Shown here: positions 19,645 to 52,004 of the stretch, one piece after another
How the letters are laid out: every line of letters begins with the position of its first letter
How positions within the stretch are numbered: position 1 is the stretch's first letter
Sequence record: OQ411014.1
Strand: one strand, 5' to 3'
Length of the DNA stretch: 64,000 bases
Position numbers and translations under genes: made by a program
Notes under the pieces: generated by a model
What the model saw: the letters and a program-made list of their open reading frames with translations, nothing else
Told to the model about the DNA's origin: nothing
The model's database searches: none

Positions 19645-19677
19645 AAAAAAGGAGACTTTGTAGTCTCCTTTCTTTTT
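19645..19677. terminator. Bidirectional rho-independent terminator
   Basis: A6-GGAGACT/AGTCTCC-T-rich, between convergent genes. Confidence 0.8.
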
Positions 19678-20854: not shown

Positions 20855-20963
20855 AATTAAATCTCCGTCTAATAATTATAATGTATTTACCAAAAAGGAC
20901 TTGACAGTACTGAACAGTACTAGTAGAATTGTATCCAAGATAACTCACTAAGGAATATCCAAA

Positions 20964-33346: not shown

Positions 33347-33350
33347 AAGA

Positions 33351-33384
33351 AAAATGCCAGTACATATTTTAGTACTGGCATTTT
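33351..33384. terminator. Bidirectional terminator built on GTAC arms
   Basis: AAAATGCCAGTAC/GTACTGGCATTTT inverted repeat between convergent genes. Confidence 0.8.
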
Positions 33385-33385
33385 G

Positions 33386-34516
33386 TTAAAATGGTAAATC
33401 TATTTGTTTGGTAATCGTCATACCTAAAGGTATTGAACACATTGACATATTTTTCCCATTTAGATTGGAAGGCGGCTGTCCGTTCATCCATATATTGGTA
33501 TCGTCATAGAATGTACTCCACCACGTAGAACCACCTTCTATGTGAATATTTTGATTAAAATCAGCGAATTGGCATTCTTGAAAAACTTCAAAAAACGGAA
33601 TAGATGATAAACTACTACTAGTAAATGGTGTATATCCTGTTGCCATTAACTTATTCGTATCTGAATTTACTAAAAAGATAACATTACCTGCATTGTATGG
33701 TACATATTTGGGATATAAATTACTCATATCACCAATAGGGAAGTTAATATTAAATATTTTACTATGCGTACCCGTTCCTGAAAGTGTAGTACCAGTTACG
33801 TATATTTTATTATCAGTTGTACCCATAATAAACCCAATACCAAACCCAGAACAAAATGTAATGTCGTATGAAACATTATCAAATAGTTGAACAAACGTAG
33901 TTACATCACCTGCTGGACTTTGTATTTGTAAACTATTGTTTGCACCTGCTCCCCAAACAGTTCCGTTACTTTTCACTTTGAATAAAGTATCTCCTATATA
34001 GTGACCATATATGCTATCAACTTCAGTATCAAGTTCTGTCCATTGTGACACAAAGTTTTTATGCCCTAAACCTAAACACCCATTACGATTAAGCCCTCTA
34101 CCGTACAATGTACCATCATTCATCAATACAAATACTGTATATCCACATAACATTTTTTTAATTTGTGTAACGTCGATACCATTAAAATACCCACTCCAAT
34201 CTGCATAACCTTGTTGCATTGTCGAAGAATTTGTAAATGCTTGTGTTGGCCCTGAACCATATATTTTACCACCTTTAATAATGACTGAAAACGATCCCAA
34301 CCACACATCTTGAACATCCTGAGCAATTGTTTTCAATTCACCATATGCAGTTAAGGGAGTACTTTGCCCTGAACTATATGTTGAATCTTCTCCGTGTGCA
34401 TATAATGTTCCATCTTGTGTTAGAATCATTTCTAAGTAAACAGCACTTACACTTTTCTTTATTTTATTAACTTCTATTTTATTTCCGTACTTCAACATCC
34501 TTGCAAAAGGTAACAT
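33386..34516 (-). CDS. RCC1/BLIP-II-like beta-propeller, MLPF tag (array gene 14)
   Basis: MLPFARMLKYGN; DGTLYGRGLNRNGCLGLG repeat. Confidence 0.85.
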   Translation of the reverse strand: MLPFARMLKYGNKIEVNKIKKSVSAVYLEMILTQDGTLYAHGEDSTYSSGQSTPLTAYGELKTIAQDVQDVWLGSFSVIIKGGKIYGSGPTQAFTNSSTMQQGYADWSGYFNGIDVTQIKKMLCGYTVFVLMNDGTLYGRGLNRNGCLGLGHKNFVSQWTELDTEVDSIYGHYIGDTLFKVKSNGTVWGAGANNSLQIQSPAGDVTTFVQLFDNVSYDITFCSGFGIGFIMGTTDNKIYVTGTTLSGTGTHSKIFNINFPIGDMSNLYPKYVPYNAGNVIFLVNSDTNKLMATGYTPFTSSSLSSIPFFEVFQECQFADFNQNIHIEGGSTWWSTFYDDTNIWMNGQPPSNLNGKNMSMCSIPLGMTITKQIDLPF

Positions 34517-34525
34517 GATAATCTC

Positions 34526-35704
34526 CTATCGATCAAATTTAAAATCTGTTATGTGTGTCCAAACATGTGGTAATGGTGTACTCAATGGTGTAAATCCAGC
34601 AGGGTCTGACAAAGTACTACCACATGCGTACATAAATTGATTACCAGTACAATCCATTATAGCATAAGAACGTGTAGCTGTACCACATTTGAATCCAACT
34701 GCACTGCTTGGTGTTGGTAATACTTCAAATGTTAGTGCATTTGATGAACCACCACCATCCTTTGTACCTGCGATGTATAGTACTCCATTATTATCAATGA
34801 TTAAGTTGGTCCAATATGCTTGTTCTCTCCCAGCAAGGAAATATGATAAATCACCTGGTACAAATGGTAATGTTCCTTTATACATGGTAGTATTAACATT
34901 CACTGGTGCTCCAGATACACCCCAAGCACTCATGAAGTTTCTTCCACTTGCGTAGAATGTAGTTCCTTTACCGTAAAGTATTAACGTCGCTTGACTTGTA
35001 CGCATTGCATTGTATTCAAACTCAGGATCATCAGTTGCGTTCTTAAAAATCTGTGTCCATGATGTGATATTTCCAGCAGTTGTTACGCCCATTTGATAAT
35101 AATAATTATCACCAGTAGCATAGAATTCTTTTGGTCCAGTTTGCACAACTGCATTACTATTAGTGAGCCAAAAATTCAAAGTTCCAGTTCTTACTATAGT
35201 TGGTGTAAAATTACCGACTGTGTTTCCTTTACCGAAATAACCATTCGCGTTATCCCCATGACCCCACACATCACCATTTGTTGTACGTATGAATAATGTA
35301 CCAGTATTGAAAGCAACTTTTTCTATAGTACTGATATCAATACCAGCCGAAGTGTACTTCGATGTGAAATCTTGAAAAGTACCCCAATAATTAGATGAAC
35401 CATTAAACATTGCTTGTCTACCAGTGTACTTCACTTTATTATCATTAGTTATAAGTAACGTCCCCCACACTGACGCGAACATCAACTTAACATTTTCCAT
35501 AACGAAATATGGTTTACCATATGCCGCAGCGGTAGAGTTCCTCCCTAAAAGTTGACCATTATTACTACAACCCCATACTTCGCCATTATCCAATAGCATT
35601 AACATTGTAGGCTTACCCGATGACACATCCAAGAAGAAATCCACGGGTGTTGCACCTTTCGGTATCACATTTCCATATTCTAACATCCTTACAAAAGGTA
35701 ACAT
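34526..35704 (-). CDS. RCC1/BLIP-II-like beta-propeller, MLPF tag (13)
   Basis: MLPFVRMLEYGN; GDVWGHGDNANGYFGKG. Confidence 0.85.
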   Translation of the reverse strand: MLPFVRMLEYGNVIPKGATPVDFFLDVSSGKPTMLMLLDNGEVWGCSNNGQLLGRNSTAAAYGKPYFVMENVKLMFASVWGTLLITNDNKVKYTGRQAMFNGSSNYWGTFQDFTSKYTSAGIDISTIEKVAFNTGTLFIRTTNGDVWGHGDNANGYFGKGNTVGNFTPTIVRTGTLNFWLTNSNAVVQTGPKEFYATGDNYYYQMGVTTAGNITSWTQIFKNATDDPEFEYNAMRTSQATLILYGKGTTFYASGRNFMSAWGVSGAPVNVNTTMYKGTLPFVPGDLSYFLAGREQAYWTNLIIDNNGVLYIAGTKDGGGSSNALTFEVLPTPSSAVGFKCGTATRSYAIMDCTGNQFMYACGSTLSDPAGFTPLSTPLPHVWTHITDFKFDR

Positions 35705-35775
35705 AATCAAATCTCCGTAATTAAATCATACAGTATTTACAAAAAAAATGCCAGTACATATTTCAGTACTATATA

Positions 35776-36942
35776 TTATTGGGGAAAGCGTGGATCGTCA
35801 AGAATAAATTCAGTACTGCTAGTTCCACCATCTGTGATATATGTTCCAGTACTATAGATGTAGTTTCCATCAGTTAGATACGTTCTGAAATTCGTACCAA
35901 TAACCTTAACATTAGGCATATCAGTTACTTCAGATGGTAAAATACATTTTGTATAGAATAGTTTATTTCCACTTGAACCTACACCTAAACAAACATAGTT
36001 GCTGGTATTATAACCACTACCATATACACCATCGGTTGTAACAACAAATGATTTATAATATTCGTATCCCAAATTGACACTTAAACGTTCACCTGCGGGT
36101 TGTTGTCCAGCCGAAATAGTACTATAAGCCTTATAAGTACCAGCCGAATCCTGACCATTACCAAGTGCACCAAATCGAGCAGCACCACCATTATATACGT
36201 TTTTAACTAATGAAGAATTTTGGTTTATACCAATAGCAACAAATTCGTTATTACTATACGCTATATTTGGACTTCCAACAGAAGTTGAATTTAACGTATA
36301 AATGGTTACTCTAGCACTAACATCATTATTATTATACCCAACAATTGTTCCAGTGTAATATAATTTACCGTCTTCTGTATTAAATCCATGCATGGTGCTA
36401 TTTGCGAATATTTTATGTGGGATAATACCATCTGGTATGGTGGCTTTAACAAAAGAACCAGTAATATTCGCTGTAGTATTATTTCCTAATTCACCATAGC
36501 TGCCGTACCCAGTTGACCATATAGTATCATTGGATAATAAAACACTTAGAGAGAATTTTGATGTTACGATATCTTTAATATCTGCCTCTAACAACGCAAA
36601 CAATGAAGAACAATCTGTCCATTGATTAACTGAACCACCAGGAACGCCAATATATGAGTTATTACCACTGAACCAGAACTCCCCATTGAACTTTTGAACT
36701 AATATAGTTTCCGCAGTAACCCATACCTTTTGTACGGAATCCAACGTCGGTGTCCATACAGTAACTTTAGTACCACTGGCATTACCCATACCAAACGCAC
36801 CCGATTGGTCACGCCCACGAACAAATAACTCACCAGATGTCATTAGAACAACCGTGAAATACATAGAGCATTTAATATCTTTTATTGGTGCTGGTGTTGG
36901 GGCTTTATTCCCATAATTTATCATCCTCACAAAAGGTAACAT
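35776..36942 (-). CDS. RCC1/BLIP-II-like beta-propeller, MLPF tag (12)
   Basis: MLPFVRMINYGN; IWSTGYGSYGELGN. Confidence 0.85.
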   Translation of the reverse strand: MLPFVRMINYGNKAPTPAPIKDIKCSMYFTVVLMTSGELFVRGRDQSGAFGMGNASGTKVTVWTPTLDSVQKVWVTAETILVQKFNGEFWFSGNNSYIGVPGGSVNQWTDCSSLFALLEADIKDIVTSKFSLSVLLSNDTIWSTGYGSYGELGNNTTANITGSFVKATIPDGIIPHKIFANSTMHGFNTEDGKLYYTGTIVGYNNNDVSARVTIYTLNSTSVGSPNIAYSNNEFVAIGINQNSSLVKNVYNGGAARFGALGNGQDSAGTYKAYSTISAGQQPAGERLSVNLGYEYYKSFVVTTDGVYGSGYNTSNYVCLGVGSSGNKLFYTKCILPSEVTDMPNVKVIGTNFRTYLTDGNYIYSTGTYITDGGTSSTEFILDDPRFPQ

Positions 36943-37019
36943 AATTAATTCTCCAAAATTAAAATAATTATAAGGTATTTAATAAAAAAATACCAGCACC
37001 TTTCAGTACTGGTATTATA

Positions 37020-38402
37020 TTACATACTAGTTAATTGTATTTCTGTTAATGTCGCATAAGTTACGCCTTTGTAAATCCCACGCCAATAAATTTTCCCATC
37101 AGTTCCCATAACTACTAATCCATAGGACAAATGAGCACCAGCATCGTTATAGAGTGTTCCACCAACGTACATAGCATCATATACATCAATGCCAATATCT
37201 TCTGGTGTGAAATTCGCCACCGCCCCAGTAGACCATGTTGGACTTGCAAAATAATCACTATATACACCATGTGCTACTGTTATAACACTTGATCCTCGTT
37301 CATACAACACAGTACCACAAAAACTCATGTGGATACGCGTCGTCTGCGTCGTCGGTATATCAACCAATCCAGCACCTGGGTAAGACCCTGTAGTAATCTT
37401 CTTGTAATCACCACCAGTTGTGTTCAAGCTATTGACAGATGTACTACTCATACCAACGTTGTAGTTCTGGTAGTAATAGAAATTACCACTTATATATACT
37501 GAATACCCACCACCAGTACCATTACGTAATAATTTACCACCGGAAGTGAATAATATACCCTCATTACATGAATCAAAATGATATGTATCAGTTGTTGGAG
37601 CAACAATCTCAGTCCATGCTGTTAGGTTCTGATACGCCCCAGGTGTGTTCGTTAAGCATCTATTACTGTTTGTTCCTTTACCAACCAACGAGCCATCTTC
37701 TAATTGTGCATAAATTGCTTGATAACCATCAGTGTAATAAGTTGAGTTGTGAGCGAAACCAAGAATACCACTTATCTTTTTGACTTTTTGTGTTAATTTG
37801 GTATCTTTAACAAAACCAACAGTCCATTGACCATATGATACAATCTCGTTTATCATACCTAACCCATATGGGCCATTGTACCATATCTCACCCGCATCGT
37901 TAAGTACTACAACTAATCCTTCGTACTTACTTGTAAATGTCCCACTATTCCATGTTACTGGTCCGTTATTATATGCACTTACAACAATCGCATCAACTAT
38001 AGTCCCAACTTTGGTCAAAAATGCACTTACATCAACCCATTGGTAATCAGTCGTGAAAGGTGCACTAGTAGTACTCGCGTTAGTGAACAAACCAGTACTG
38101 TACTGTCCACAGAAGAAATATTTTCCGTTATTATCCAGTACTAAACATCCAATGTTTAATAACCAGAAATCCTTTACATTAGTACGGATAGCTTCTAAAC
38201 CAGAATCAACTGGAGTTTGTACACCAAAGGCAACCTTCTTCGTGTTACCCATTCCATAAAGAGTACCATCATTTCCTAAAATAGCACCCGCCCAGTTCCC
38301 ACCGCCATTTGAGTTTCGTCCTCTACCTACAGTTTGCATCTTTGTACCTTTAGGCACTTCAACTGTATTTCCATAATTTAACATCCTCACAAAAGGTAAC
38401 AT
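37020..38402 (-). CDS. Beta-propeller protein, MLPF tag (11, longest)
   Basis: MLPFVRMLNYGN; DGTLYGMGN and DGSLVGKGTN repeats; start moved from 38417. Confidence 0.8.
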   Translation of the reverse strand: MLPFVRMLNYGNTVEVPKGTKMQTVGRGRNSNGGGNWAGAILGNDGTLYGMGNTKKVAFGVQTPVDSGLEAIRTNVKDFWLLNIGCLVLDNNGKYFFCGQYSTGLFTNASTTSAPFTTDYQWVDVSAFLTKVGTIVDAIVVSAYNNGPVTWNSGTFTSKYEGLVVVLNDAGEIWYNGPYGLGMINEIVSYGQWTVGFVKDTKLTQKVKKISGILGFAHNSTYYTDGYQAIYAQLEDGSLVGKGTNSNRCLTNTPGAYQNLTAWTEIVAPTTDTYHFDSCNEGILFTSGGKLLRNGTGGGYSVYISGNFYYYQNYNVGMSSTSVNSLNTTGGDYKKITTGSYPGAGLVDIPTTQTTRIHMSFCGTVLYERGSSVITVAHGVYSDYFASPTWSTGAVANFTPEDIGIDVYDAMYVGGTLYNDAGAHLSYGLVVMGTDGKIYWRGIYKGVTYATLTEIQLTSM

Positions 38403-38474
38403 AACTAAATTCTCCAAAATTAAAATAATTATAATGTATTTACAAAAAAATACCAGTACGTATTTCAGTACTGG
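38379..38474 (-). repeat. Repeated terminator/late-promoter/RBS/tag cassette of the propeller array (representative copy)
   Basis: 96 bp identical to 39629-39724; 85 bp shared with 43394-43478; degenerate copies at most junctions. Minus strand reads hairpin CCAGTAC..GTACTGG, T-run, GTAAATA, GGAG, ATGTTACCTTTTG. Confidence 0.9.
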
Positions 38475-38482
38475 CTTTTTAA

Positions 38483-39652
38483 TTAAGAAGGTAATAGAAA
38501 ATTAGCAAATCCACCCATCCCCAATGTGGGTACTAATCCAGCTACAGTTGGTGCTCTATTTGATGGTGAGCTAACAGCAATTCGACCATCTTTATATACC
38601 AATGAATTAGAACTGCCTGTGCATAAGTATCCACCTGAATATGGTACTGTACTTTGTTTACATTTGGTGAAAATTCCAATGGAAGACGATGCATTTATTA
38701 AATTTACACCATCATATCCACAACTATATATCCACCCATCTTCCCCTATGTATAAAGAAGAACTTGCATTTGCCGAACTAACGAACTTTCTGAATATTCG
38801 CTGATCCATAGGAGCAACTGACAATGTACCGGAATAGAATTTATTATTAATACCACTAGTAACACCGTCACCAAATACACCATAAGAACCTGAACCAGTT
38901 GCATAGTATCGTTTATCTCCCAAGAAAATCATACAGTTGTTATTGCATATTTTATATTGATATATTAAAGTAGTATCAATTCCTGGGAAAGATTCAGTAA
39001 ATGATAGAACATTAGCAATTGTACTTGCGTTGCATTGATGACTTGCATTTTGTCCTGATGATAAAATTGTTCCATCTTGTAGTAATATTCGAGATGTACC
39101 AGTACCACTAAAAACTCTTAATGCTGGTTTTGTATTATATATTTGTTTAAATGAAAAGAAACCAACAGACATTATTCCCTGACCACTCCATCCAGTATTG
39201 TCAGTTCCAATAGCCCATACTGAATCGTCTTCAGCGATAACCATAACACCATAGCGGTCAATGCTAATATCTTTAATTTTGGACATATCAATTGCATTGA
39301 ACCTTGAACTAATATCCTTCCATGTTGTTGTGCTTGCAGTAGGACTTACAGTTATATCATTCCCTGCTATATAAACACTCCCACTTATTGTAACATAAAT
39401 CGTTTGGGAATACCCAGTACTGCATAATAATACATTTTCTGAACTTGGAACCTTAATCCATTCGTTGTAAACTCCAGTTTGGGGCGTAATACCTAACTGA
39501 TAAAAATCATTTGACCCAGTAAGATATAGTTTTCCATCCTTAACAAAACTGAAATTAGAACTGTAATCACTGGATGTAAGTCTTGGTTCAATTGGTACTG
39601 GTGGTACTGGTGCATTATTCCCATATTCTAACATCCTCACAAAAGGTAACAT
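38483..39652 (-). CDS. RCC1/BLIP-II-like beta-propeller, MLPF tag (10)
   Basis: GKLYLTGSNDFYQLG; close paralog of 43486-44658. Confidence 0.85.
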   Translation of the reverse strand: MLPFVRMLEYGNNAPVPPVPIEPRLTSSDYSSNFSFVKDGKLYLTGSNDFYQLGITPQTGVYNEWIKVPSSENVLLCSTGYSQTIYVTISGSVYIAGNDITVSPTASTTTWKDISSRFNAIDMSKIKDISIDRYGVMVIAEDDSVWAIGTDNTGWSGQGIMSVGFFSFKQIYNTKPALRVFSGTGTSRILLQDGTILSSGQNASHQCNASTIANVLSFTESFPGIDTTLIYQYKICNNNCMIFLGDKRYYATGSGSYGVFGDGVTSGINNKFYSGTLSVAPMDQRIFRKFVSSANASSSLYIGEDGWIYSCGYDGVNLINASSSIGIFTKCKQSTVPYSGGYLCTGSSNSLVYKDGRIAVSSPSNRAPTVAGLVPTLGMGGFANFLLPS

Positions 39653-39739
39653 AACTAAATTCTCCAAAATTAAAATAATTATAATGTATTTACAAAAAAA
39701 TACCAGTACGTATTTCAGTACTGGTATTGTGGTATTGTA

Positions 39740-40846
39740 TCATTTCGGCATTGTAATTGCAGACCATGAATTTGAAGTAATTGGACCTGGTACGAACACT
39801 GTTGAACCACATGCATAAATTTGTCTATCCCCATCATACACAACACTAAAGCTAGTACAAGTAAACAATGACGAATTTAATGGATTGTAAGTATCTAATG
39901 TTAGTGTATTCTCCCACTGACTTGAACCTAGACCACCTGACCTACCAAATGCACCAGTACTGTATATCTTACCTTCAGTTGTTGCATATATATTAACATA
40001 TGAAGTTGAACTGGATTTAGATATTTTATGTATCTTATTATCAATTGCACTAGGGTTAAATGTAAATGGATATATTTGTACGTTAGTTCTTGAACCATTA
40101 CCAAGTTGACCATCATACTGCCAGCCAGCAACGTATGTACTACTACCTGAATATGCTATAGTACTAGTACTGTTACCGCCCAGTATTTTAACACTAGTTA
40201 AACGACTTACTAAAGTAATGTACTGCCCTTGACTCACACCCAGTGAACCATAACTACTAGTCCCACATCCAATAAGGTCACCGTTGGATGTTAAGATTAA
40301 TGTGTTGTTTTGCGTACCATATATATCAGCAACTTCATTTGTACCAGTATTCAGTACTAACACAAAAGCACTCTGTGAACTTGGATATCCACCACCGAGT
40401 GAATAGTTACCGTTCATGCCTCTTCCATAAACCTTTGTACCACTAGCATCTACGTAGTGCATCGTATCTGAACCAATTGATATCATTTTAATATTAGATA
40501 TGTGTGGGAATGAAGAAGTAACATCTAAACCACCCAAGGGGATTGCAGTATTACCCGTACCTAACTGAGAAGTAACTCCGTGTATTCTGAACTCTTCTCC
40601 TTTGAGATACAGAAGACTGTACCCACCAGCCCATGCATCAGAAACACCCTCTGCAACTAATATCCAAGTATTTTTTGCTGCTGTACCAAAGACATTCAAC
40701 TGCAAATATGAATTATCTCCACATCCATATAATGTCCCATCACTATATAGTACGTACAAATTATTGGTTCCACAAAATACTTTCTTGATCGTTATACCTT
40801 CTGGGGCTATATTTCCATAGGTCATTATTCTTGCAAAAGGTAACAT
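39740..40846 (-). CDS. RCC1/BLIP-II-like beta-propeller, MLPF tag (9)
   Basis: DGTLYGCGDNSYLQL, GCGTSSYGSLG, GWQYDGQLGNG. Confidence 0.85.
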   Translation of the reverse strand: MLPFARIMTYGNIAPEGITIKKVFCGTNNLYVLYSDGTLYGCGDNSYLQLNVFGTAAKNTWILVAEGVSDAWAGGYSLLYLKGEEFRIHGVTSQLGTGNTAIPLGGLDVTSSFPHISNIKMISIGSDTMHYVDASGTKVYGRGMNGNYSLGGGYPSSQSAFVLVLNTGTNEVADIYGTQNNTLILTSNGDLIGCGTSSYGSLGVSQGQYITLVSRLTSVKILGGNSTSTIAYSGSSTYVAGWQYDGQLGNGSRTNVQIYPFTFNPSAIDNKIHKISKSSSTSYVNIYATTEGKIYSTGAFGRSGGLGSSQWENTLTLDTYNPLNSSLFTCTSFSVVYDGDRQIYACGSTVFVPGPITSNSWSAITMPK

Positions 40847-40937
40847 AATTAAATCTCCATATAATAATTATAATGTATTTACAAAAAAAGCCAGTACGTA
40901 TTTCAGTACTGGTATTGTGGTATTGTGGTATTGTGAT

Positions 40938-42128: not shown

Positions 42129-42215
42129 AACTAAATTCTCCAAAATTAAAATAATTATATTGTATTTACAAAAAAAATACCAGCACATATTTCAGTACTG
42201 GTATTGTTTCTTATT

Positions 42216-43406
42216 TTATTGCCATAACTGTGTTGGCATTAGGGTTAGTGTAGTAACAACAGACGCACCATTAGGTAAGTTACCACCAGAACCATTAAAA
42301 CCACCACACGCATATAATTTATAATCTTTAGTAACAATTAATGTCCTGGACCAGTCTTTAGATGCCATAAGAACATTGTCATATCCACCAGGTATAGCAG
42401 TTAATTTAAACAACGCCCACGAATTAACTAGAGTTGTATTTCCTGTTCCTTGTTGACCATATGAATTGACACCACCACTCCTAACATATGATGGGTATTG
42501 AGCCATAGGTGTACCAATTGATGCGTTACCCATAGAACTAGGACATAAGAAAGCATCACTAATATTCACTGTAACTTGTGAATTTTTAACTGGAGTGAGT
42601 TGGTTTGTAGATGAAGTAGTACCATTCCCAGCTTGTCCAGTATTGTTGTAACCACTCCAATACACACTACCAGCAGTGAACCACCAAGTAACATCATAGG
42701 TAGCACTTATATAATCGACGTTCGTTCGTATTAATTTATTAGTATAAACGAATGAGCTAGTCCCACCCCCACTTTCACCAAAGTTATCCTTACCACAAAA
42801 CCATGCTTCTTTATTTGTTTTGAGATAGTGTGTACCCTGTAATGAACATGCGAGTTGAGAAACTTCACCCATATTAGTCATAACTGTTAGTACTGGAATA
42901 GCATTTTTATTCCCTGAACCACATTCAGCATTTGTATTGTTACCACAAGCAATGACTCTTCCATCGTGTAGTAATATTCTAGTACTTTCACCTATATGTA
43001 CACTCTTGATTAAATTAGCGTGCACATTAATTTTGTCAAAGGAAGCAGTAACATCAGTCCATGTTAAGAAATATCCATTAACAGGAGTTGCGGCTCCATA
43101 ATCAGGAAATGCACCTATCGACCCAGTGTAGTATATTCTATTATCCAGATCAATCATCAATGATCCATGAACACCTACCCAAAACGCCGCACAGTGCATT
43201 GCGAGTACAGTAAAAGTAGAAACTGTTGATCTATTCCCTAGACCTAATTGGCCCAAGTTATTACTACCATATCCGTATAATGTATTCGTGGGCTTATGTA
43301 GATACATAGCATTGGTGTATTGTTGCTGTAAAACATCAGTAAACTCTACTGGATCAGGAGGGGCAATCGTATTCCCATAAGTCATTATTCTTGCAAAAGG
43401 TAACAT
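42216..43406 (-). CDS. RCC1/BLIP-II-like beta-propeller, MLPF tag (7)
   Basis: LYGYGSNNLGQLGLG, WSGYNNTGQAGNG. Confidence 0.85.
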   Translation of the reverse strand: MLPFARIMTYGNTIAPPDPVEFTDVLQQQYTNAMYLHKPTNTLYGYGSNNLGQLGLGNRSTVSTFTVLAMHCAAFWVGVHGSLMIDLDNRIYYTGSIGAFPDYGAATPVNGYFLTWTDVTASFDKINVHANLIKSVHIGESTRILLHDGRVIACGNNTNAECGSGNKNAIPVLTVMTNMGEVSQLACSLQGTHYLKTNKEAWFCGKDNFGESGGGTSSFVYTNKLIRTNVDYISATYDVTWWFTAGSVYWSGYNNTGQAGNGTTSSTNQLTPVKNSQVTVNISDAFLCPSSMGNASIGTPMAQYPSYVRSGGVNSYGQQGTGNTTLVNSWALFKLTAIPGGYDNVLMASKDWSRTLIVTKDYKLYACGGFNGSGGNLPNGASVVTTLTLMPTQLWQ

Positions 43407-43485
43407 AACTAAATTCTCCAAAATTAAAATAATTATAATGTATTTACAAAAAAATACCAGTACGTATTTCAGTACTGGTATAATG

Positions 43486-44658
43486 TTATGGTAAAATAAT
43501 AGCTTGTAACGAACTCATACCCAATTCTGGAACACTCGCCTGTGGTGCTGGTGCATTCACTTTTGGTGATGAAACCGCATAAGTCATTCCTGTACCCAAA
43601 TCTGGATCAAAAACTACAGAACAATAATCCCCATTGTATATAAGTCCATTAGTATATCCTTGTGCACTTTGAATGCATTTCGTGAACGTACCAATGTCAG
43701 TAGTGGCATTTATTAAGTTCCTCCCACGGTAGCCACAGGTGTATATGAAATTATCAACACCTATGTACATACTCGCATTCCCAGAAGAACTACATAGATA
43801 AGACATATAAGCACGCATGTTTTTAGGAGCAACTGACAATGTACCAGCATAGAATTTATTATTCGAACCCGAAATATCACCATCACCCAAAGCACCAAAA
43901 CTCCCCCAACCAGTACCATAATATCTCTTATCACTCAAGAATATAATACAGTTGTTATTACACATCTTGATTTGATATATCAATGAAGGATCAACCCCAG
44001 GGAATGATTCAGTGTATGTTAGAACAGCCAGATCAGTACTAGCATTACATTGATGATATGTATTAGTACCAGCGGACAATATTGTACCATTAGCTAATAG
44101 AATCCTCGAAGTGCCAGTACCAGCAGTACAAGCAACAGCATTACCTGTATATATTTGTCTGAAAGTAAAGAAACCAACAGTTTTACTCCCCTGTCCACTC
44201 CAACCAGTATTATCAACACCACATGCCCATACTGAACCATCTTGCATGATCATCATTACACCATAGCGTTCTATCGAAATATAGACAATCTTCGTAGTAT
44301 CAACTGCACTAAATCTAGAAGTTATATCAGTCCAAACCTTTACACTCACCGCCGTCGCACCGAAAGTAGGATCTTCCCCTGCTATCATTATCCTACCATT
44401 GTTAGTCAGATACATTGTCTGACCATAACCAGTACTACAAAACTTAACACTATCAGTCTCTGGAACTTTTAACCACTCGTTGTAACGTGTTACGTTAGTG
44501 TTATTACCTAACTGATAATAGTTATTCATCCCAGATACATATAACACACCATCCTTTATTAAACTATAAGTCGCACTATAGTCACTACAGGTATAACGTG
44601 TACCCACAGGCCGCTCAACGACGTTCCCATATTCTAACATCCTTACAAAAGGTAACAT
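43486..44658 (-). CDS. RCC1/BLIP-II-like beta-propeller, MLPF tag (6)
   Basis: GVLYVSGMNNYYQLGN; close paralog of 38483-39652. Confidence 0.85.
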   Translation of the reverse strand: MLPFVRMLEYGNVVERPVGTRYTCSDYSATYSLIKDGVLYVSGMNNYYQLGNNTNVTRYNEWLKVPETDSVKFCSTGYGQTMYLTNNGRIMIAGEDPTFGATAVSVKVWTDITSRFSAVDTTKIVYISIERYGVMMIMQDGSVWACGVDNTGWSGQGSKTVGFFTFRQIYTGNAVACTAGTGTSRILLANGTILSAGTNTYHQCNASTDLAVLTYTESFPGVDPSLIYQIKMCNNNCIIFLSDKRYYGTGWGSFGALGDGDISGSNNKFYAGTLSVAPKNMRAYMSYLCSSSGNASMYIGVDNFIYTCGYRGRNLINATTDIGTFTKCIQSAQGYTNGLIYNGDYCSVVFDPDLGTGMTYAVSSPKVNAPAPQASVPELGMSSLQAIILP

Positions 44659-44732
44659 AATCAAATCTCCGTAATTAAATCATACAGTATTTACAAAAAA
44701 ATACCAGTACATATTCCAGTACTGGCCTATTA

Positions 44733-45854
44733 TTAAAAGGGCAACGGTAACTCAGTAAAAGTACTTACGTTCGGTAAACCATACATTAAATTAGCATCAC
44801 CACAGTAATACCACTTCGTAGAATCATGTACCACCGATAAACGCTGTGCACATAACACTTCCTGTATGTCATTAAACACCATCGGGACTAACTCATATGT
44901 ATCCGCATATGAAGATTCACCACCACTCGCATGAAAAGTATTCATCCCAGCATAAAATAACTGATTAGTGTTCTTACCCACAGCAAATGTCATCAATATC
45001 CCATCATTCTCCCATAAAGAAGAAAACTTATCAACACTACCAGAAAGCTCTGTGTAAGTACTCGTAATGGCACTCGCAGCCGCCGCATTACCCATCTGTT
45101 TATTCAAGTTCTGTCCAGCAATAAAATATCTCGTGCGTGCACTAGAATCAGTATATAATAACCCAGTGTTCGTAGTCATCATTCCAATGTCCTTAATCGT
45201 CATACCAGTCTGTGAATAACTTAGATACGAAGTTAAACTACCATTATTACCCAACGAACCGTTATCACTCATGCCACAACGATGTAATATACCACTTGTA
45301 TCAACGTAGATAGTACTAACTAAACTCGTATACAACTCTTGTACATTATTCGCAATAAACACAGCAGTCGCCTTATTAGTAACCCCACCAAATGATAGGT
45401 TATTATCAAATCCCTTAGCGTATAATTGATTATTAGTAGTAACTAACCCAATCGCGTAATAAGATATTTTCATATCCCTTACAGTACTCAAATCTACTAC
45501 CCCAAATTGATGCGTAACATCTGTCCATGTGAAAATCTGTGCACTACCAACACCACCCGTTTCAAACCATTTGTCACCACAGTACAATATGCGATTATCC
45601 TTAGTAAAGATAACTGTTACCAATCCACTACCACACGCAAACTTTACATCACTTCTAACCTTCGTCCAATCAAGTACATAGGTAGTGGTGTTATTACCTA
45701 TACCTAACTTACCATAACGGTTATAACCACGCACCCACAAATCACCACTCTCAGTAATTAATAGTAATGCGTCTCCTGTACTTATTATTCGAAATCCCGA
45801 ACTAGGATCGGGTGCTATATTCCCATAAGTCATCATTCTTGCAAAAGGCAACAT
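44733..45854 (-). CDS. RCC1/BLIP-II-like beta-propeller, MLPF tag (5)
   Basis: GDLWVRGYNRYGKLGIG. Confidence 0.85.
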   Translation of the reverse strand: MLPFARMMTYGNIAPDPSSGFRIISTGDALLLITESGDLWVRGYNRYGKLGIGNNTTTYVLDWTKVRSDVKFACGSGLVTVIFTKDNRILYCGDKWFETGGVGSAQIFTWTDVTHQFGVVDLSTVRDMKISYYAIGLVTTNNQLYAKGFDNNLSFGGVTNKATAVFIANNVQELYTSLVSTIYVDTSGILHRCGMSDNGSLGNNGSLTSYLSYSQTGMTIKDIGMMTTNTGLLYTDSSARTRYFIAGQNLNKQMGNAAAASAITSTYTELSGSVDKFSSLWENDGILMTFAVGKNTNQLFYAGMNTFHASGGESSYADTYELVPMVFNDIQEVLCAQRLSVVHDSTKWYYCGDANLMYGLPNVSTFTELPLPF

Positions 45855-45935
45855 AATAAAATCTCCGTAATTAAATCATACAGTATTTACAAAATACCAG
45901 CACATATTTCAGTACTGGTATAGTGGTATATTAAA

Positions 45936-47084
45936 TCACTGCACAAATGACATATCAACTTCTGTGTAACTAGGCACGCTCTGTGTAGAAAGACCACCCA
46001 TTGCTACCATCGCAATTCCACAATAATATAACTTCCCTTTGTCATCGAGTAACAATGTCCCAGATGGTGTTGTTACTAAATTACACGAAGTATTAAAAGA
46101 AGTATATGAAGGAGTATAGTAGTACTGATTAATGGTATTACCTACACCTAATTTTCCATACCCATTGCCGCCAGATGCGTAAAGTACTTCATCTGCTTTG
46201 ACAATATGTGATGCCATGTTACTAACACACGTATATACAGCACTAACTCCTGTACTCAATAATGTAGGAGTCTTGTATTGGAGATCAGTACTGGAAGATG
46301 TTCCACCTGTACCAAATTCATTACCGTATTGTGCACCGTATTGTTTACCACATCCGTACAAATTACCATCACTCTTAATAAAAAACGTACTCTGGTAACT
46401 TACATTAAAATCAATAACATCTGATGCAATCTGCTTTACTCCAGTGATAGAAACCTGATCCCCTGTACCTAACTGATAGTAATAGTTAAATCCACATCCC
46501 CATAAGGTATTGTCTGTACGCAAATAAATGTTACCAACAGCCTTTTTAACAGACGTTATAGTACTGACCTTCTTGAATGTATTAAATGAACTAATGTTTG
46601 TACCATCTCCAAAGGATGTTATATTAGATATGTTATTAGCACCACAACAATATAATGTACCGTCATTTGTTACCAAATTCACCTTCATATTATTAAAACT
46701 ACTCATGTACGCAATATCCGAAACAGTAATACCACTGGATGTTATCCACGTAGTACAATCCGTCCATAACGTCTTTCTATCAGTTACACCAGTGAATGCA
46801 TTTGTGTTTCCAGTCATAAACACTTTCCCTGTGCCCTCTTCTTCATACAACTGACAATCACTGCTGTTATCTTCCAATAGAACTCTTTTAACGTTCTCTG
46901 CACATAGAATAAATTTACTCGCAGCTACTCCAGTTCCCGTACCATAAATGCTTCCAGATGATGCATACAACTTTTTAGTGAAAGTATCATGTAAGTATAC
47001 AGACATACTAGAATATATTTTAAAACGATCATCGTTAGTAGGAGCAACATTACTGTACTCCAATATCCTCGCAAAAGGTAACAT
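45936..47084 (-). CDS. RCC1/BLIP-II-like beta-propeller, MLPF tag (4)
   Basis: LWGCGFNYYYQLGTG, ASGGNGYGKLGVG. Confidence 0.85.
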   Translation of the reverse strand: MLPFARILEYSNVAPTNDDRFKIYSSMSVYLHDTFTKKLYASSGSIYGTGTGVAASKFILCAENVKRVLLEDNSSDCQLYEEEGTGKVFMTGNTNAFTGVTDRKTLWTDCTTWITSSGITVSDIAYMSSFNNMKVNLVTNDGTLYCCGANNISNITSFGDGTNISSFNTFKKVSTITSVKKAVGNIYLRTDNTLWGCGFNYYYQLGTGDQVSITGVKQIASDVIDFNVSYQSTFFIKSDGNLYGCGKQYGAQYGNEFGTGGTSSSTDLQYKTPTLLSTGVSAVYTCVSNMASHIVKADEVLYASGGNGYGKLGVGNTINQYYYTPSYTSFNTSCNLVTTPSGTLLLDDKGKLYYCGIAMVAMGGLSTQSVPSYTEVDMSFVQ

Positions 47085-47162
47085 AACTAAATTCTCCATA
47101 CAATAATTATAATGTATTTAACCAAAAAAAGCCAGCACCTTTCAGTACTGGTATCTATAATC

Positions 47163-48059
47163 CTATGTAAAAACATACTGCGTGTTAACACGTGTACCAT
47201 TGTCAAAACCAAGCACATAAAATATCTCAGGACTATTATTAGAACCAAATAACGCTCCAGTACTACTACTCAAAGTACTATTAACCGCTAACGCAATCCA
47301 TTCGTTTTGTTCTTGGTCGTATCTCAATAAATTTAATGCACCAAATGATACTGCATATATTTGTTTATCATATGTATTGTAAATTATTTTACTAGGGTTA
47401 GAACCACCAACACCAGCAATGTTAGACCACACAGCACTCTGTATATGATATTTTTGTGCAGTACTCACACCTTGGCCTGTAATATATATGTAAGTACCAT
47501 CTGTACACATATCACCACCACCATTGTTATTTGTACCATCACTCGTACCTAATGATGCCCAGGTATTAGTACTAGGAGTATAACTGTATAACGAATTATT
47601 AGTAGGAGATCCCCACAAATATATCTTATCACCAGCAGTAATCATCTTACTATACGCCAGTTGATTAGGCTTCCCAATACTGTTAGTGTTCAGAATCCAG
47701 GTATTTGTACTTATATTATATACATAAAAATTATTAGCACCATTACCAGTACCACCAAACAAATATATTTTCCCCTCATAAAAACATAACGCACTACCAA
47801 ATGTAGATACAGGTGCATTGGCTAATTGTAACCACGTTCTAGTACTTAAATTAAAACTCCATAACTGATTATCCCCCATCACCGCATTCTGTATACCACC
47901 AAATATATAAGCAGTATTACTTTTCGCATCATACGTATAACCAAAGTTATTTTTAGCAGGAGGTACAGGTGATGTCGTAAATGCAGAACGTATTCCCCTA
48001 TTGGTAGCAAACACCTCTGCAACATTCCCGTACTCCAACATCCTTACAAAAGGTAACAT
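47163..48059 (-). CDS. Kelch-repeat beta-propeller, MLPF tag (3)
   Basis: AYIFGG...LWSFNLSTRTW, KIYLFGG...YNISTNTW, KIYLWG...YTPSTNTW Kelch pattern. Confidence 0.85.
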   Translation of the reverse strand: MLPFVRMLEYGNVAEVFATNRGIRSAFTTSPVPPAKNNFGYTYDAKSNTAYIFGGIQNAVMGDNQLWSFNLSTRTWLQLANAPVSTFGSALCFYEGKIYLFGGTGNGANNFYVYNISTNTWILNTNSIGKPNQLAYSKMITAGDKIYLWGSPTNNSLYSYTPSTNTWASLGTSDGTNNNGGGDMCTDGTYIYITGQGVSTAQKYHIQSAVWSNIAGVGGSNPSKIIYNTYDKQIYAVSFGALNLLRYDQEQNEWIALAVNSTLSSSTGALFGSNNSPEIFYVLGFDNGTRVNTQYVFT

Positions 48060-48136
48060 AACTAATTCTCCAAAATTAAAATAATTATAATGTATTTACA
48101 AAAATACCAGCACCTTTCAGTACTGGTATAGTAGTA

Positions 48137-49246
48137 TTATATCGGTAAATCTATCTTAGTGAAAATACCAACATCTTCACTCGCTCCAGGTATTGCATAA
48201 TATGTCCCAGTACTGTACACTTCACCATCTTTTGTTAATATAGATGTTAAACCATCACTATAAAGAACATCCCTGATATCACTAACTCCAACTGGTAACT
48301 GCAAATTCGTTGCACTATAAACCGCTCCAGTCTGAGAATTGTTTAATCCTAAACCACGGTTTGAACCTACACCCTTCTGATATGTACTAGTAATTATAAT
48401 TTGTGTAGCAGTATTTAATGCAGGTGAATTCGTCATAAACAACGGAGAACTATTAGGCAAAGAACTTGCAGGAACTGCACGAAATGTAGTTGCATCTGAA
48501 CTAAGAAAGTTTGGCGTTTGACCACATACGAAATATGATGTACCATTATAGTAATTAAATGCATTACCACCTATAGCTGCATCTATTACTCCAGTACTAC
48601 GTAATCCCCACGTGTTAATTTGTGTTCGGTTCCCCGTACCATGCTGACCCCTGTCATTCCACCCAGAACTATATAACTTATTATCTAATGTAATATACAT
48701 ACTGTCATTTGCATTCGTCATTACTTTACGCACATTAGTAGCACATTGAGTTAATGTGTAAATTGATGATGAACCAATACCTAAAGCACCACGATATCCA
48801 TTAGCCCCTGCACCATAGAGTACTGAACTAGTGCTAAGTACAAATATTAAACCATACGAACATACTATATCAGCAATTTCATTTACCGATAGTACACTAG
48901 TAAACCACGCAGTCCTATCAACTAATACAGTACTGTAAGAAGTCCCAGTAGAAGACGAAAACCAATAAGTCTCACCAGTAGTCCATATAGTATTGTCACT
49001 CTTAATAACAACAACTGTACGATCACCAGCAAAAAAATTAGTAACTCCTGTACTCACTAATGTCCATGAAGATACAGTGTTCGTATTGTTATTACCCGAT
49101 TCCCCACCCTGATTCCTACCTATGTAATATAATTCATTCGTGTCAGTCAACACATACTGCCCCTGCGTCGATGCCCCAACCTTAATTATATTTTTAGGAC
49201 CGGGTGCAACATTCCCGTACTCCAACATCCTTACAAAAGGTAACAT
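48137..49246 (-). CDS. RCC1/BLIP-II-like beta-propeller, MLPF tag (2)
   Basis: KLYSSGWNDRGQHGTG. Confidence 0.85.
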   Translation of the reverse strand: MLPFVRMLEYGNVAPGPKNIIKVGASTQGQYVLTDTNELYYIGRNQGGESGNNNTNTVSSWTLVSTGVTNFFAGDRTVVVIKSDNTIWTTGETYWFSSSTGTSYSTVLVDRTAWFTSVLSVNEIADIVCSYGLIFVLSTSSVLYGAGANGYRGALGIGSSSIYTLTQCATNVRKVMTNANDSMYITLDNKLYSSGWNDRGQHGTGNRTQINTWGLRSTGVIDAAIGGNAFNYYNGTSYFVCGQTPNFLSSDATTFRAVPASSLPNSSPLFMTNSPALNTATQIIITSTYQKGVGSNRGLGLNNSQTGAVYSATNLQLPVGVSDIRDVLYSDGLTSILTKDGEVYSTGTYYAIPGASEDVGIFTKIDLPI

Positions 49247-49256
49247 ATTTCTCTCC

Positions 49257-50387
49257 TTAATTTAATAATGCCCCTGGCAAATCCACTTTGACGAATTGTG
49301 CATATGCTGTGGAATTTTGATCAAAGTTTGGTCCCAATCCATAAAATGAGCTAATGCCGTCTTCATTTGTGTATATGATATAAACGTTCTTTACATCATT
49401 TCCGCATATAAATCGAATGTCTTTCGTTTGTGTTCCCGCTGGAACATTACGAAGGCTCACAACGCCATTACTTGCATTGTTATCAGCCGACGCAATTGGT
49501 AATTGATTTTGACCATATTGACCACGCATATTTTTTGCATCTAAACCAAACACAGTATTTGATACCGCACCAACTTTCAAAAATGAACCAAAACTATCAT
49601 TGAATGACTTTGGAAATGTACCACTATAAACACTTCTCCCATCTGATAATACCGCTGAACTGAATTTCCCGCTATTCGATATGGCAAATTCATTGTAAGG
49701 AAGTGTACCCATTTTGGTATATACAGAATATGAATTAGTGGAAGTATTATCAATAATCTTATTACCATTATATCCAATACCATACTGGTATCCGTCTGCA
49801 TCTTGAACTATACACAAAGGACCACTTGGGGTTTGTGTCAACGAAACAACACGTTCAACTTGTATATCACCAAATGTATTTCTTCGCCATGTTCTATCTA
49901 TTATAGTACTAGTATTACCCAAAGATAATGCCACACTATATAATAGATTGTTTTCAGTAAAAATGGCAACATAATATGCGTGGTTAATAACTTGCTTCAT
50001 CCCAGCATCAATAACTTCCTGTGGAATATGATCAGTAACATCCAACCAATCAAGGTTAGATGATGCAATATCTGGAGTACTGAATTTGTCAAATCTAGTT
50101 GAGCCACAAACTAGCACTCTATCATCATTTGTCAAAGCCACTGTGCTAGTCTGCATATTAGAACTGAATGATTTAACATTACTAATGTTAGACTTGTACC
50201 AACCCTTATCAGCAGCACCCACCGTGAATCCGGTTCCCATTGATCCACTTGTACTTGTACCATAAGCCCACATCTCACCACTATATGTTAGTGCCATACA
50301 GTGGCTTCCATTTGCTTGGAAATCCTTTATACCAGTGGGAGCAGCCACTGTATTCCCATAATTAAACATTCTAACAAAAGGTAACAT
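49257..50387 (-). CDS. Beta-propeller protein, MLPF tag (1)
   Basis: MLPFVRMFNYGN; GEMWAYGTSTSGSMGTG. Confidence 0.8.
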   Translation of the reverse strand: MLPFVRMFNYGNTVAAPTGIKDFQANGSHCMALTYSGEMWAYGTSTSGSMGTGFTVGAADKGWYKSNISNVKSFSSNMQTSTVALTNDDRVLVCGSTRFDKFSTPDIASSNLDWLDVTDHIPQEVIDAGMKQVINHAYYVAIFTENNLLYSVALSLGNTSTIIDRTWRRNTFGDIQVERVVSLTQTPSGPLCIVQDADGYQYGIGYNGNKIIDNTSTNSYSVYTKMGTLPYNEFAISNSGKFSSAVLSDGRSVYSGTFPKSFNDSFGSFLKVGAVSNTVFGLDAKNMRGQYGQNQLPIASADNNASNGVVSLRNVPAGTQTKDIRFICGNDVKNVYIIYTNEDGISSFYGLGPNFDQNSTAYAQFVKVDLPGALLN

Positions 50388-50501
50388 AATAATCATCCCT
50401 ATACAATAAAATTATATAGTATTTACCAAAACAACTATTGACAACACAATAGCAGTACTGTATAGTATAGCAATAAAATTCCCACATAAAGGCCCAACAA
50501 C

Positions 50502-51194
50502 ATGAAACTCTCTAAACTACAAAAGCACTACAATTCAGTACTGAAAGCTACTAAAGCAGCTAATACACTACTATTCAATGAACCCCCAAAAAATATATTC
50601 AAACATATACCCAAAATGTATATAACAAAATCCCCAAATAAAATCCTTAAAAAGATTTCACAAAAATATAACATAACAATTGCTCACGTAGGTAAGTCCA
50701 AATCAAACCATAAACTATCATTCAGTACTAAAGCTAATGAAAGAACTACATTCATAGAATTTTCACTGTACAATATCCCGTGCGTTCTTTGGATCTCACC
50801 AGCAGTATACTTCGATGCTACATCTAAAGTGCATATAAACAATTCGTACAAAAACTTATTCTCATTCAATAATATCGACGACACACAACAACCAAGAGTC
50901 TCACTAGCAAATTCCGGCGATTCATACTTATCAGATAAAATACAAAACTCTAAACTAATCGTAACTACACCTAATAAAGAACTACAAAAAGTACTAGCTA
51001 AAAATCTGCACACAACCTATAAGAACTATACAGAAGAAGAAATCTTCCAACAATCTCTAGTACTACCTAATGCAGAACTCTATATAGCAGCACAAAACAT
51101 AAACATAAAAATAGCAGAACTAATCTCTAATAACAACTGTACTATAAAAGATATTATATACACTATAGCTAATGAAACTATTCATAACATATAA
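50502..51194 (+). CDS. Hypothetical protein, LTEAELF family
   Basis: MKLSKLQKHY like 32055; KELQKVLAKNL...YTEEEIFQQSLVLPNAELY like 32672; TTGACA-17-TATAGT promoter at 50438-50466. Confidence 0.8.
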   Translation: MKLSKLQKHYNSVLKATKAANTLLFNEPPKNIFKHIPKMYITKSPNKILKKISQKYNITIAHVGKSKSNHKLSFSTKANERTTFIEFSLYNIPCVLWISPAVYFDATSKVHINNSYKNLFSFNNIDDTQQPRVSLANSGDSYLSDKIQNSKLIVTTPNKELQKVLAKNLHTTYKNYTEEEIFQQSLVLPNAELYIAAQNINIKIAELISNNNCTIKDIIYTIANETIHNI

Positions 51195-51999: not shown

Positions 52000-52004
52000 G
52001 ATTT

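Follow-up and report, generated by a model that had tools for sequence, protein, structure and literature searches.

An array of 14 tandem genes in the genome of Escherichia phage EJP2 (OQ411014.1, Asteriusvirus, 349,185 bp) encodes propeller proteins that share one 12-residue N-terminal peptide, here called the tag, and we found that this tag recurs on unrelated folds across the Rak2-like phages. The window that we analyzed comprises 64,000 nucleotides (nt) and, since its base 1 corresponds to record base 285186, is the final 64 kb of the EJP2 record; bases 33000-51000 of the window match that record with 100% identity. The array consists of 14 intact minus-strand open reading frames (ORFs) at 33386-50387 (EJP02_497 to EJP02_510, labeled in the record as "GTPase regulator," "BNR repeat domain protein" or hypothetical), 13 of them for RCC1-like propellers and one for a Kelch propeller. 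With slightly better than even confidence, we read these genes as encoding late-expressed, outward-facing virion modules that would be docked to the particle by the short conserved tag. The clade-wide occurrence of the tag on unrelated folds, which an earlier note on this DNA had overlooked, is the strongest clue to its role. The 14 tandem propeller genes described in that note were all recovered, and a 15th tagged gene that it had missed stands alone among plus-strand genes outside the array, with the same promoter and ribosome-binding site (RBS) as the array genes; beyond the array and this solitary copy, no further tagged gene was found in the 349-kb EJP2 genome. The array, as a set of "RCC1/DNA condensation" genes in relatives, and its virion association are already known. 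In the literature searched, we found no description of the shared tag, its spread over folds and genera, the non-RCC1 tagged bodies, the private promoter cassette or the block-wise shuffling of the locus.

A conserved N-terminal peptide precedes divergent propellers and unrelated folds

Taking the conserved Met of the tag as the protein start, the array proteins are 298 to 460 residues long. Among the paralogues, the first 12 residues show a median identity of 83%, compared with a median of 24% and a maximum of 55% for the bodies, which bears out the divergent bodies behind a conserved start that the earlier note had proposed. The same boundary appears in the ATG-anchored column conservation, which is 0.88 over codons 1-12 and 0.47 over codons 13-30. 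Within EJP2, the first four tag codons are almost invariant as DNA. A census of the tag, based on a degenerate DNA pattern scan of IMG/VR and fetched loci and on ORFs of at least 150 residues, returned 118 tagged ORFs in 17 Rak2-like genomes of approximately 350 to 380 kb, with bodies of 168 to 688 residues; single IMG/VR matches on small contigs were short ORFs and were treated as chance. The IMG/VR pattern itself fixes or restricts tag positions 1, 3, 4, 10 and 12, where residue shares are uninformative, so that more divergent tags, such as some Yersinia copies without the Tyr-Gly-Asn end, escape the count. At the other positions of the 118 tags, residue 2 is Leu (74%) or Ile (26%), residue 6 is Arg in 79% and residue 11 is Gly in 95%, and positions 5 and 7-9 are variable. 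Codon usage at the conserved residues is mixed (Pro3, 59 CCT and 52 CCA; Tyr10, 59 TAT and 58 TAC; Gly11, 53 GGG, 34 GGA and 23 GGT), and this free synonymous variation indicates selection on the peptide rather than on the DNA.

Matches to distant jumbo phages begin at residue 1 of the tag. We found the same tag on genes 001 and 002 of GAP32, on five tandem RCC1 genes of Yersinia phage fHe-Yen9-04, on about 12 genes of Klebsiella phage fENko-Kae01 and, in Xanthomonas phage XbC2, on an RCC1+Kelch fusion, a Kelch protein and a "structural protein." The tagged bodies fall into RCC1-like (approximately 365 to 400 residues), Kelch (approximately 300) and RCC1+Kelch (667 to 688) classes, two ConA-like lectin classes (approximately 200 to 260 residues; Laminin_G_3 at 33.2 bits, above the cut-off), a glycine-rich domain and a 168-residue family with no assigned fold; CBB encodes 11 tagged proteins, none of which is RCC1-like. 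Copies that sit in operons without a promoter cassette of their own are tagged as well, namely those following junctions 34516 and 49246 in EJP2 and most copies in the Yersinia, Xanthomonas and Klebsiella phages. In Vequintavirinae (approximately 145 to 150 kb), homologous RCC1-like and ConA-like bodies stand behind a different common N-terminal peptide of about 14 residues, as in PBES 02 and EspYZU15 (locus positions 5995-6645; 1252-1974 and 5004-6167). The same bodies behind another shared peptide suggest that the label is lineage specific and that the cargo families are common to both groups.

The tag lies outside the propeller fold

Curated Pfam cut-offs for RCC1 or RCC1_2 were passed by 10 of the 13 RCC1-like array members. 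Two others (the genes starting at 38483 and 44733) match the Pfam RCC1-like domain only, below its cut-off, and the remaining one (37020), which is without a Pfam match, was assigned through PHROG (9e-13) and through hhalign to the paralogue profile (98.8%). The single Kelch protein (47163) has five Kelch repeat models above the curated cut-off. An AlphaFold2 model of the gene at 39740, built on 25 aligned relatives, is a confident propeller (predicted local distance difference test [pLDDT], 90.6; predicted template modeling score [pTM], 0.89) and is the one model on which the confident fold assignment rests; its best Foldseek matches are UVR8, HERC2, RPGR and RCC1, with template modeling scores of 0.65 to 0.80. 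For the divergent protein at 37020, AlphaFold2 returned an all-beta model of low confidence (pTM, 0.71; pLDDT, 62.9).

In the confident model, the first strand starts at residue 20, and residues 1-19 have no secondary structure and a pLDDT of 48 to 70. Proline occurs within residues 13-20 in 13 of the 15 tagged proteins. Taken together, these features describe a design of tag, short linker and domain. We also considered the tag as the closing strand of the propeller and rejected this, given that it is unstructured in the model and is present on non-propeller bodies too.

All 15 EJP2 proteins have an isoelectric point of 5.2 to 7.0 and a net charge of -7 to 0, are rich in Ser, Thr, Asn and Gly, and have no basic tail. 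This neutral-acidic composition fits poorly with the "DNA condensation" label taken from eukaryotic RCC1, a label that, judged from the sequences, appears unsupported. The nearest cellular relatives start with signal peptides or lipoprotein signals instead of the tag. Several bodies align to the C-terminal part of far longer PHROG virion-protein families, and the RCC1-domain proteins of Clostridium phage phiCD211 and Bacillus phage SP-15 are located inside tail-fiber modules. A sequence search of the PDB gave no phage relative of the tagged proteins.

A terminator, promoter and RBS cassette points to late expression

Eleven of the array junctions, 71 to 91 nt long, share one organization: a hairpin on CCAGTACTG...CTGG is followed by a T-run, by (G/T)TAAATAC, 1 to 3 bases and TAT(A/G)AT, and by GGAG located 7 to 9 nt before the ATG (Table 1). 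The cassette hairpins fold at -10 to -20 kcal/mol. Terminator-like sites, defined as a GC-containing hairpin with a T-run, number 22 compared with 7.3 +/- 2.8 in shuffled sequences, and 10 of the 22 are at gene ends on the coding strand. The earlier note had given every gene a terminator, promoter, RBS and tag; the tag is indeed on all of them, but the full cassette is confined to these 11 junctions, the first gene having a promoter only and two junctions an RBS only. Those two junctions, 34516/34526 (9 nt) and 49246/49257 (10 nt), had been singled out in the note as lacking the cassette, and we agree; gene 2 (EJP02_509), 10 nt after gene 1 and with an RBS only, is probably cotranscribed with it. 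The 96 bp of identity mentioned there was also recovered as the longest exact repeat, which spans -72 to +23 relative to the ATGs at 38402 and 39652. As separate observations on the terminators, CACAATAC micro-repeats of 2 to 3 units lie directly upstream of two hairpins (39729-39739 and 40913-40937).

The exact 8-base T4 late motif, TATAAATA, which the earlier note had read in the cassettes, occurs in none of the 13; all carry a one-mismatch variant with the core TAAATA. The composite TAAATAC-N(1-3)-TAT(A/G)AT occurs 13 times in the genome, each time before a tagged gene, and is thus private to tagged genes. The shorter form (A/T)TAAATA is found 30 to 60 nt before the ATG of the EJP2 capsid, sheath, protease-region and many other structural genes, in agreement with the late motif proposed for CBB and GAP32 (PMC5259590). 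EJP2 encodes a gp55-type late sigma factor, EJP02_240 (phrog_12791, 6e-148; phrog_234, 3e-18). An alternative reading of the TATAAT-like box as a sigma-70 element was discarded: such sites are not enriched in the array (80 observed versus 85 expected), and no -35 partner is present at the cassettes. The tailspike genes of the related phage K64-1 show the same order of terminator, late motif, RBS and ATG. Given the core shared with structural genes, the private composite motif, the encoded gp55-type sigma factor and the lack of sigma-70 enrichment, late timing of the tagged genes, as the earlier note had suggested, is well supported by promoter class.

Several observations concern related cassettes. 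In K64-1, the tailspike/depolymerase genes (21594-46472 of the locus examined) carry cassettes of a terminator, a TATAAATA motif and an RBS; one N-terminal peptide is common to five of these genes, and another is common to three on the opposite strand. Synteny between the propeller array and this cluster was considered and rejected: the K64-1 cluster sits after anaerobic reductase genes, a position that corresponds to EJP02_152-154 in EJP2, which makes the propeller array a locus of its own. EJP02_419 (record 283787-284929, just outside the window), a solitary minus-strand gene with a GTAAATAC promoter variant, lacks the tag and matches phrog_10468, annotated in PHROG as "virion structural protein." Downstream of the array, small plus-strand genes at 53280-63960 are preceded by at least 15 repeats of another type of cassette, in which a sigma-70-like promoter (TTGCAC or TTGACA, 17 nt, TATAAT) is combined with a conserved leader hairpin (GAGCGGGAA...TTCCCGC) and an RBS; it resembles an early-gene equivalent of the late array cassette. 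The palindrome CAGTACTG (core AGTACT) is found both in the array terminator stems (33351-48129) and around the -35 of these early promoters (53280-63960), and it may either be bound by the same protein at both places or reflect base composition.

Array content varies between isolates, and cassette and tag evolve in concert

Compared with Turkey3, 7 of the 15 EJP2 genes have an orthologue of at least 75% identity, in permuted order, and only three genes reach at least 70% identity in phAPEC6 and only two in 121Q. Array content is thus not invariant among isolates, with Turkey3, phAPEC6 and 121Q all differing from EJP2. Nucleotide homology between EJP2 and Turkey3 is restricted to blocks of one or two genes, whose ends fall either in the cassette or, at the point where the tag ends, 37 to 43 nt into the next gene. 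Purifying selection acts on the orthologous bodies, with a ratio of nonsynonymous to synonymous substitutions (dN/dS) of 0.13 to 0.23 where divergence is measurable. In these orthologues, divergence is higher in the first 14 codons than in the bodies; for the gene at 44733, whose Turkey3 orthologue carries a different tag, the proportion of synonymous differences (pS) is 0.036 in the body versus 0.49 in the tag. The variable tag residues 5-9 track the genome rather than the orthologue, each isolate having its own commonest variant, and cassettes are identical over up to 75 to 96 bp ahead of unrelated bodies. Blocks that end at the cassette or tag, genome-specific tags and shared cassettes together demonstrate concerted evolution of cassette and tag, behind which the bodies are shuffled. 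This agrees with the recombination-driven repertoire envisaged in the earlier note.

The genes at 38483 and 43486, which had been taken for recent duplicates, are the closest pair but an old one (55.6% amino acid identity, 62% nucleotide identity, pS of 0.62); of the two, only the gene at 43486 has a 93% orthologue in Turkey3. Annotation and integrity of the arrays also vary. Of the 12 tagged ORFs with at least 150 residues in phAPEC6, several are located where no gene is annotated. One 121Q array member is a broken copy that reads only 68 codons from the tag, compared with 391 in its phAPEC6 counterpart.

Tagged proteins of related phages are found in virions

The virion association put forward in the earlier note is backed by published mass spectrometry of orthologues and tagged relatives. 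The structural proteome of phAPEC6 includes gp003, 005, 006, 007, 009 and 010 (PMC7247149), of which gp009 is the 75% orthologue of the EJP2 protein at 39740, and GAP32_001 was also detected by mass spectrometry (PMC5259590). In CBB, the published virion proteins include the tagged CBB_549, 551, 552 and 553, with 6, 4, 2 and 7 peptides, respectively, and with the highest coverage, 50.7%, for CBB_549. The published virion table of JP4 contains three tagged proteins. Hair-like fibers, which the note had mentioned for this phage group, are indeed reported on the capsid and sheath of phAPEC6, 121Q and CBB; a protein at every hexamer center has been described in 121Q and phAPEC6, and phAPEC6 has an inner body of unassigned composition (PMC7247149).

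Table 1. Tagged genes and associated regulatory elements in the EJP2 window (window positions)
Feature	Position	Strand	Remarks
Promoter-like motif and RBS ahead of first array gene	50388..50440	-	No terminator upstream; divergent plus-strand gene from 50502
Tagged gene 1, EJP02_510	49257..50387	-	RCC1-like, 376 aa; Pfam RCC1_2 29.2 bits, above cut-off; Turkey3 orthologue 98%
Tagged gene 2, EJP02_509	48137..49246	-	RCC1-like, 369 aa; phAPEC6 and 121Q orthologues 84-85%
Full cassette	48060..48136	-	Hairpin and T-run, TAAATAC/TATAAT motif, GGAG; hairpin -17.2 kcal/mol
Tagged gene 3, EJP02_508	47163..48059	-	Kelch, 298 aa; PF24681 79.6 bits (cut-off 50); Kelch_6 65 bits; phrog_12615
Full cassette, TTAAATAC variant	47085..47162	-	
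Tagged gene 4, EJP02_507	45936..47084	-	RCC1-like, 382 aa; Pfam RCC1 35.3 bits; Turkey3 orthologue 80%
Full cassette, short T-run, TGTATGAT variant	45855..45935	-	
Tagged gene 5, EJP02_506	44733..45854	-	RCC1-like, 373 aa; Pfam RCC1-like domain 6e-18, below cut-off; Turkey3 orthologue 94%
Full cassette	44659..44732	-	75 bp identical to 35705-35775 cassette; the two gene bodies unrelated
Tagged gene 6, EJP02_505	43486..44658	-	RCC1-like, 390 aa; old paralogue of gene 10; Turkey3 orthologue 93%
Full cassette	43407..43485	-	
Tagged gene 7, EJP02_504	42216..43406	-	RCC1-like, 396 aa; Pfam RCC1 36.4 bits; orthologues 84% Turkey3, 71% phAPEC6
Full cassette	42129..42215	-	
Tagged gene 8, EJP02_503	40938..42128	-	RCC1-like, 396 aa; Pfam RCC1 25.5 bits
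Full cassette	40847..40937	-	
Tagged gene 9, EJP02_502	39740..40846	-	RCC1-like, 368 aa; Pfam RCC1_2 47.8 bits; 75% orthologue of phAPEC6 gp009
Full cassette	39653..39739	-	Shares 96-bp identity with 38403..38482 cassette, reaching codon 8
Tagged gene 10, EJP02_501	38483..39652	-	RCC1-like, 389 aa; Pfam RCC1-like domain 2.6e-19, below cut-off
Full cassette	38403..38482	-	
Tagged gene 11, EJP02_500	37020..38402	-	Divergent RCC1-like with insertions, 460 aa; no Pfam match; phrog_4219 9e-13
Full cassette, TTAAATAC variant	36943..37019	-	
Tagged gene 12, EJP02_499	35776..36942	-	RCC1-like, 388 aa; Pfam RCC1 26.5, RCC1_2 25.6 bits
Full cassette, weaker hairpin	35705..35775	-	
Tagged gene 13, EJP02_498	34526..35704	-	RCC1-like, 392 aa; Pfam RCC1_2 24.2 bits; Turkey3 orthologue 86%
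Tagged gene 14, EJP02_497	33386..34516	-	RCC1-like, 376 aa; Pfam RCC1_2 24.7 bits; 9 nt after gene 13, RBS only
Terminator hairpin closing array	33351..33384	-	13 pairs, -19.2 kcal/mol
Promoter-like motif (GTAAATAC, then TATAAT) and RBS of solitary gene	20855..20900	-	
15th tagged gene, solitary	19676..20854	-	RCC1-like by similarity to array (<=31% identity), 392 aa

Surroundings of the array

In CBB (4141-4601) and fENko-Kae01 (6253-6585; positions within the loci examined), the first tagged gene lies a few hundred bases downstream of the point where an annotated direct terminal repeat begins, and from this proximity the tagged array appears to abut the genome repeat boundary. Just past the EJP2 array, positions 51750-52480 of the window are gene poor and contain two tandem repeats, one of 48 nt and one of 39 nt, the latter present in three copies of which two are identical; the G+C content rises to 0.41 just downstream of these repeats, in the 52- to 54-kb bin. 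EJP02_431, at 4574-5566 of the window, is annotated as an RpoD-like sigma factor and is distinct from the gp55-type EJP02_240 (record 165669-166532). Outside the window, record positions 9373-32000 hold about 40 plus-strand genes of 150 to 210 codons in a long run with frequent overlaps of a few bases. A search for known RNA families in the window between 19 and 64 kb found none, and tRNAs were also looked for and not found.

A model of tag-docked virion modules and its alternatives

In the model that we favor, the array would encode late-made, virion-associated binding modules (13 RCC1-like and one Kelch, plus the 15th, RCC1-like copy elsewhere), each joined via a short, often proline-rich linker to the flexible 12-residue N-terminal peptide, which most likely serves to dock each of the modules at a single site, common to all, on the particle. 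As docking sites, the hair-like fibers or the decoration sites on the capsid and sheath of this phage group would be the likeliest, and there the modules would face outward and might bind ligands. Each gene would usually be its own transcription unit, with an intrinsic terminator, a TAAATA-type late promoter that is probably read by the gp55-type sigma factor and an RBS. Cassette and tag together would provide about 130 bp of shared homology for conversion between copies, through which copies could be shuffled, gained and lost until each isolate carries a different set. The earlier note's observation of the array is confirmed, and its overall interpretation as a recombining repertoire of virion-displayed binders is partly supported.

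Several points weigh against this model. Virion presence is taken from the proteomes of relatives; peptide counts there are low (1 to 7 per protein), and the fENko-Kae01 proteome was set aside as evidence, being too impure (unpurified lysate). Regarding a docking or branching partner (a "socket"), we found no gp10-like branching domain by Pfam in nine large EJP2 structural proteins, a search for which Pfam may lack a suitable model. Globular propellers of 40 kDa are not themselves fibers, and the link to the hairs is therefore circumstantial. Finally, the genome-tracking tag variants could be explained by gene conversion alone.

The alternative that survives best, which we nevertheless regard as unlikely, is that the tag is a capsid-targeting sequence in the style of the T4 internal proteins, so that the modules would be carried into the prohead core and stay within the head, perhaps to be delivered into the cell together with the DNA, where they might, for example, act against host defenses. 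The T4 internal proteins likewise combine diverse bodies, which have only an N-terminal targeting sequence in common, with a polymorphic locus (PMC3012670). EJP2 encodes a gp21-like head maturation protease (EJP02_252; phrog_207, 7e-57), phAPEC6 contains an inner body of unassigned composition, and virion mass spectrometry is blind to inside versus outside. However, the T4 targeting peptide ends at a protease site with a conserved Glu, whereas the EJP2-type tag has no conserved acidic cleavage position, residue 9 being Glu in 17%, Lys in 35% and Asp in 8% of the 118 tags. Moreover, the EJP2 proteins are of 30 to 50 kDa, neutral-acidic and poor in charged residues, and their lectin-like or propeller folds are those of binders, with cellular relatives that are secreted and phage relatives in fiber modules.

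Alternatively, the proteins might be late intracellular binders of host or phage proteins, detected in virions through carry-over, with a tag that has a role in translation, stability or regulation. In favor of this view, propellers serve widely as protein-binding scaffolds, several of the proteomes have low peptide counts and the first four tag codons hardly vary as DNA in EJP2. We consider it improbable nonetheless, since four independent virion preparations were positive (with half of CBB_549 covered), since across genera the tag is kept as a peptide while synonymous change is free and since the promoter class is the one common to structural genes. Less probable still is a tag without a function of its own, kept uniform only by riding with the promoter cassette in gene conversion: the identical 75- to 96-bp stretches that cover cassette and tag on unrelated bodies, and tags that follow the genome instead of the orthologue, are what it would predict, but the cassette-less operonic copies in EJP2 and in the Yersinia, Xanthomonas and Klebsiella phages keep the tag, and its invariant residues outlast codon turnover across genera. 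A role in DNA condensation or the inner body, which follows database names carried over from eukaryotic RCC1 and was proposed by the phAPEC6 authors (PMC7247149), is disfavored to the point of being hardly credible, given the near-neutral to acidic charge of all 15 proteins, the same tag on Kelch and lectin-like bodies without a DNA link, fold matches to generic RCC1-like propellers such as UVR8 and HERC2 and the absence of RCC1-like proteins from the tagged set of CBB.

Returning to the proposed docking of virion modules by their tag, it is tempting to speculate, at somewhat less than even confidence, that the peptide acts as a universal plug, by which Rak2-like phages would load up to 15 lectin-like heads (RCC1, Kelch, ConA-like and others) on a single socket of the head and sheath hair fibers, making each particle a mosaic of binders, and that Vequintavirinae do likewise with a different plug. 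If true, this would reveal what the long-unassigned "hairs" are and provide a portable address for display. Since 2017, the hairs and whiskers of CBB, phAPEC6 and 121Q have lacked an assigned gene product, and the name "DNA condensation" that the RCC1-like paralogues have borne is misleading. A single 12-residue address on many folds is a testable candidate for how such decorations are built and diversified, and a shared address would also explain the cassette-wise shuffling of the locus between isolates.

Comparison with known systems

The RCC1-like "DNA condensation" paralogues of phAPEC6, 121Q, PBECO4 and GAP32 belong to the same gene family and the same locus as the EJP2 array; the number of copies described is 11 in phAPEC6, of which the virion proteome includes six (PMC7247149), and 13 in 121Q. 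Among more distant systems, the internal proteins of T4 (the ipI-III locus of T-even phages) resemble the EJP2 modules in having a constant N-terminal address of about 10 residues, diverse bodies, a polymorphic locus and an encoded gp21-type protease. They differ in that the EJP2 tag is without a conserved cleavage residue and that the EJP2 bodies are large, neutral-acidic and lectin-like. The T4 targeting sequence is the main rival analogue; on sequence grounds it fails on the cleavage residue and on protein character, and an internal location is not indicated. Decoration proteins of capsids and tails, of the T4 Hoc type or otherwise immunoglobulin (Ig)-like, are, as the EJP2 modules would be, dispensable-looking surface-binding modules of large myoviruses; those of the Hoc type are single-copy genes with Ig folds, whereas EJP2 has a set of many paralogues with one shared plug.

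The closest known system is that of the docking peptides of the KP32, KP34, Menlow, K64-1 and K1-5/SP6 types, in which, as in EJP2, a short shared N terminus is found on otherwise unrelated virion modules. In secondary receptor-binding proteins, conserved N-terminal peptides of 7 to 29 residues, specific to a phage group, dock the module to a virion partner (Latka et al. 2019, 2026; PMC6872550, PMC13352976), and in KP32 the peptide is necessary for virion incorporation and portable between bodies (PMC13352976). At the sequence level the EJP2 tag has the corresponding features, being short, conserved compared with divergent bodies and folds, and specific to a phage group. K64-1, a relative of EJP2, also arranges its tailspike genes likewise, with terminator, late promoter, RBS and shared N terminus. 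The EJP2 bodies depart from these systems in being small non-enzymatic propellers, within a tagged set that includes lectin-like domains, instead of trimeric beta-helix depolymerases, and in numbering as many as 15 in one genome; no branching-domain partner was found by Pfam among nine large EJP2 structural proteins, and docking is something we infer. Were docking to hold for the EJP2 modules, the principle of the conserved docking peptide, shown in two-spike podoviruses, would extend to a larger, non-enzymatic repertoire in jumbo phages.

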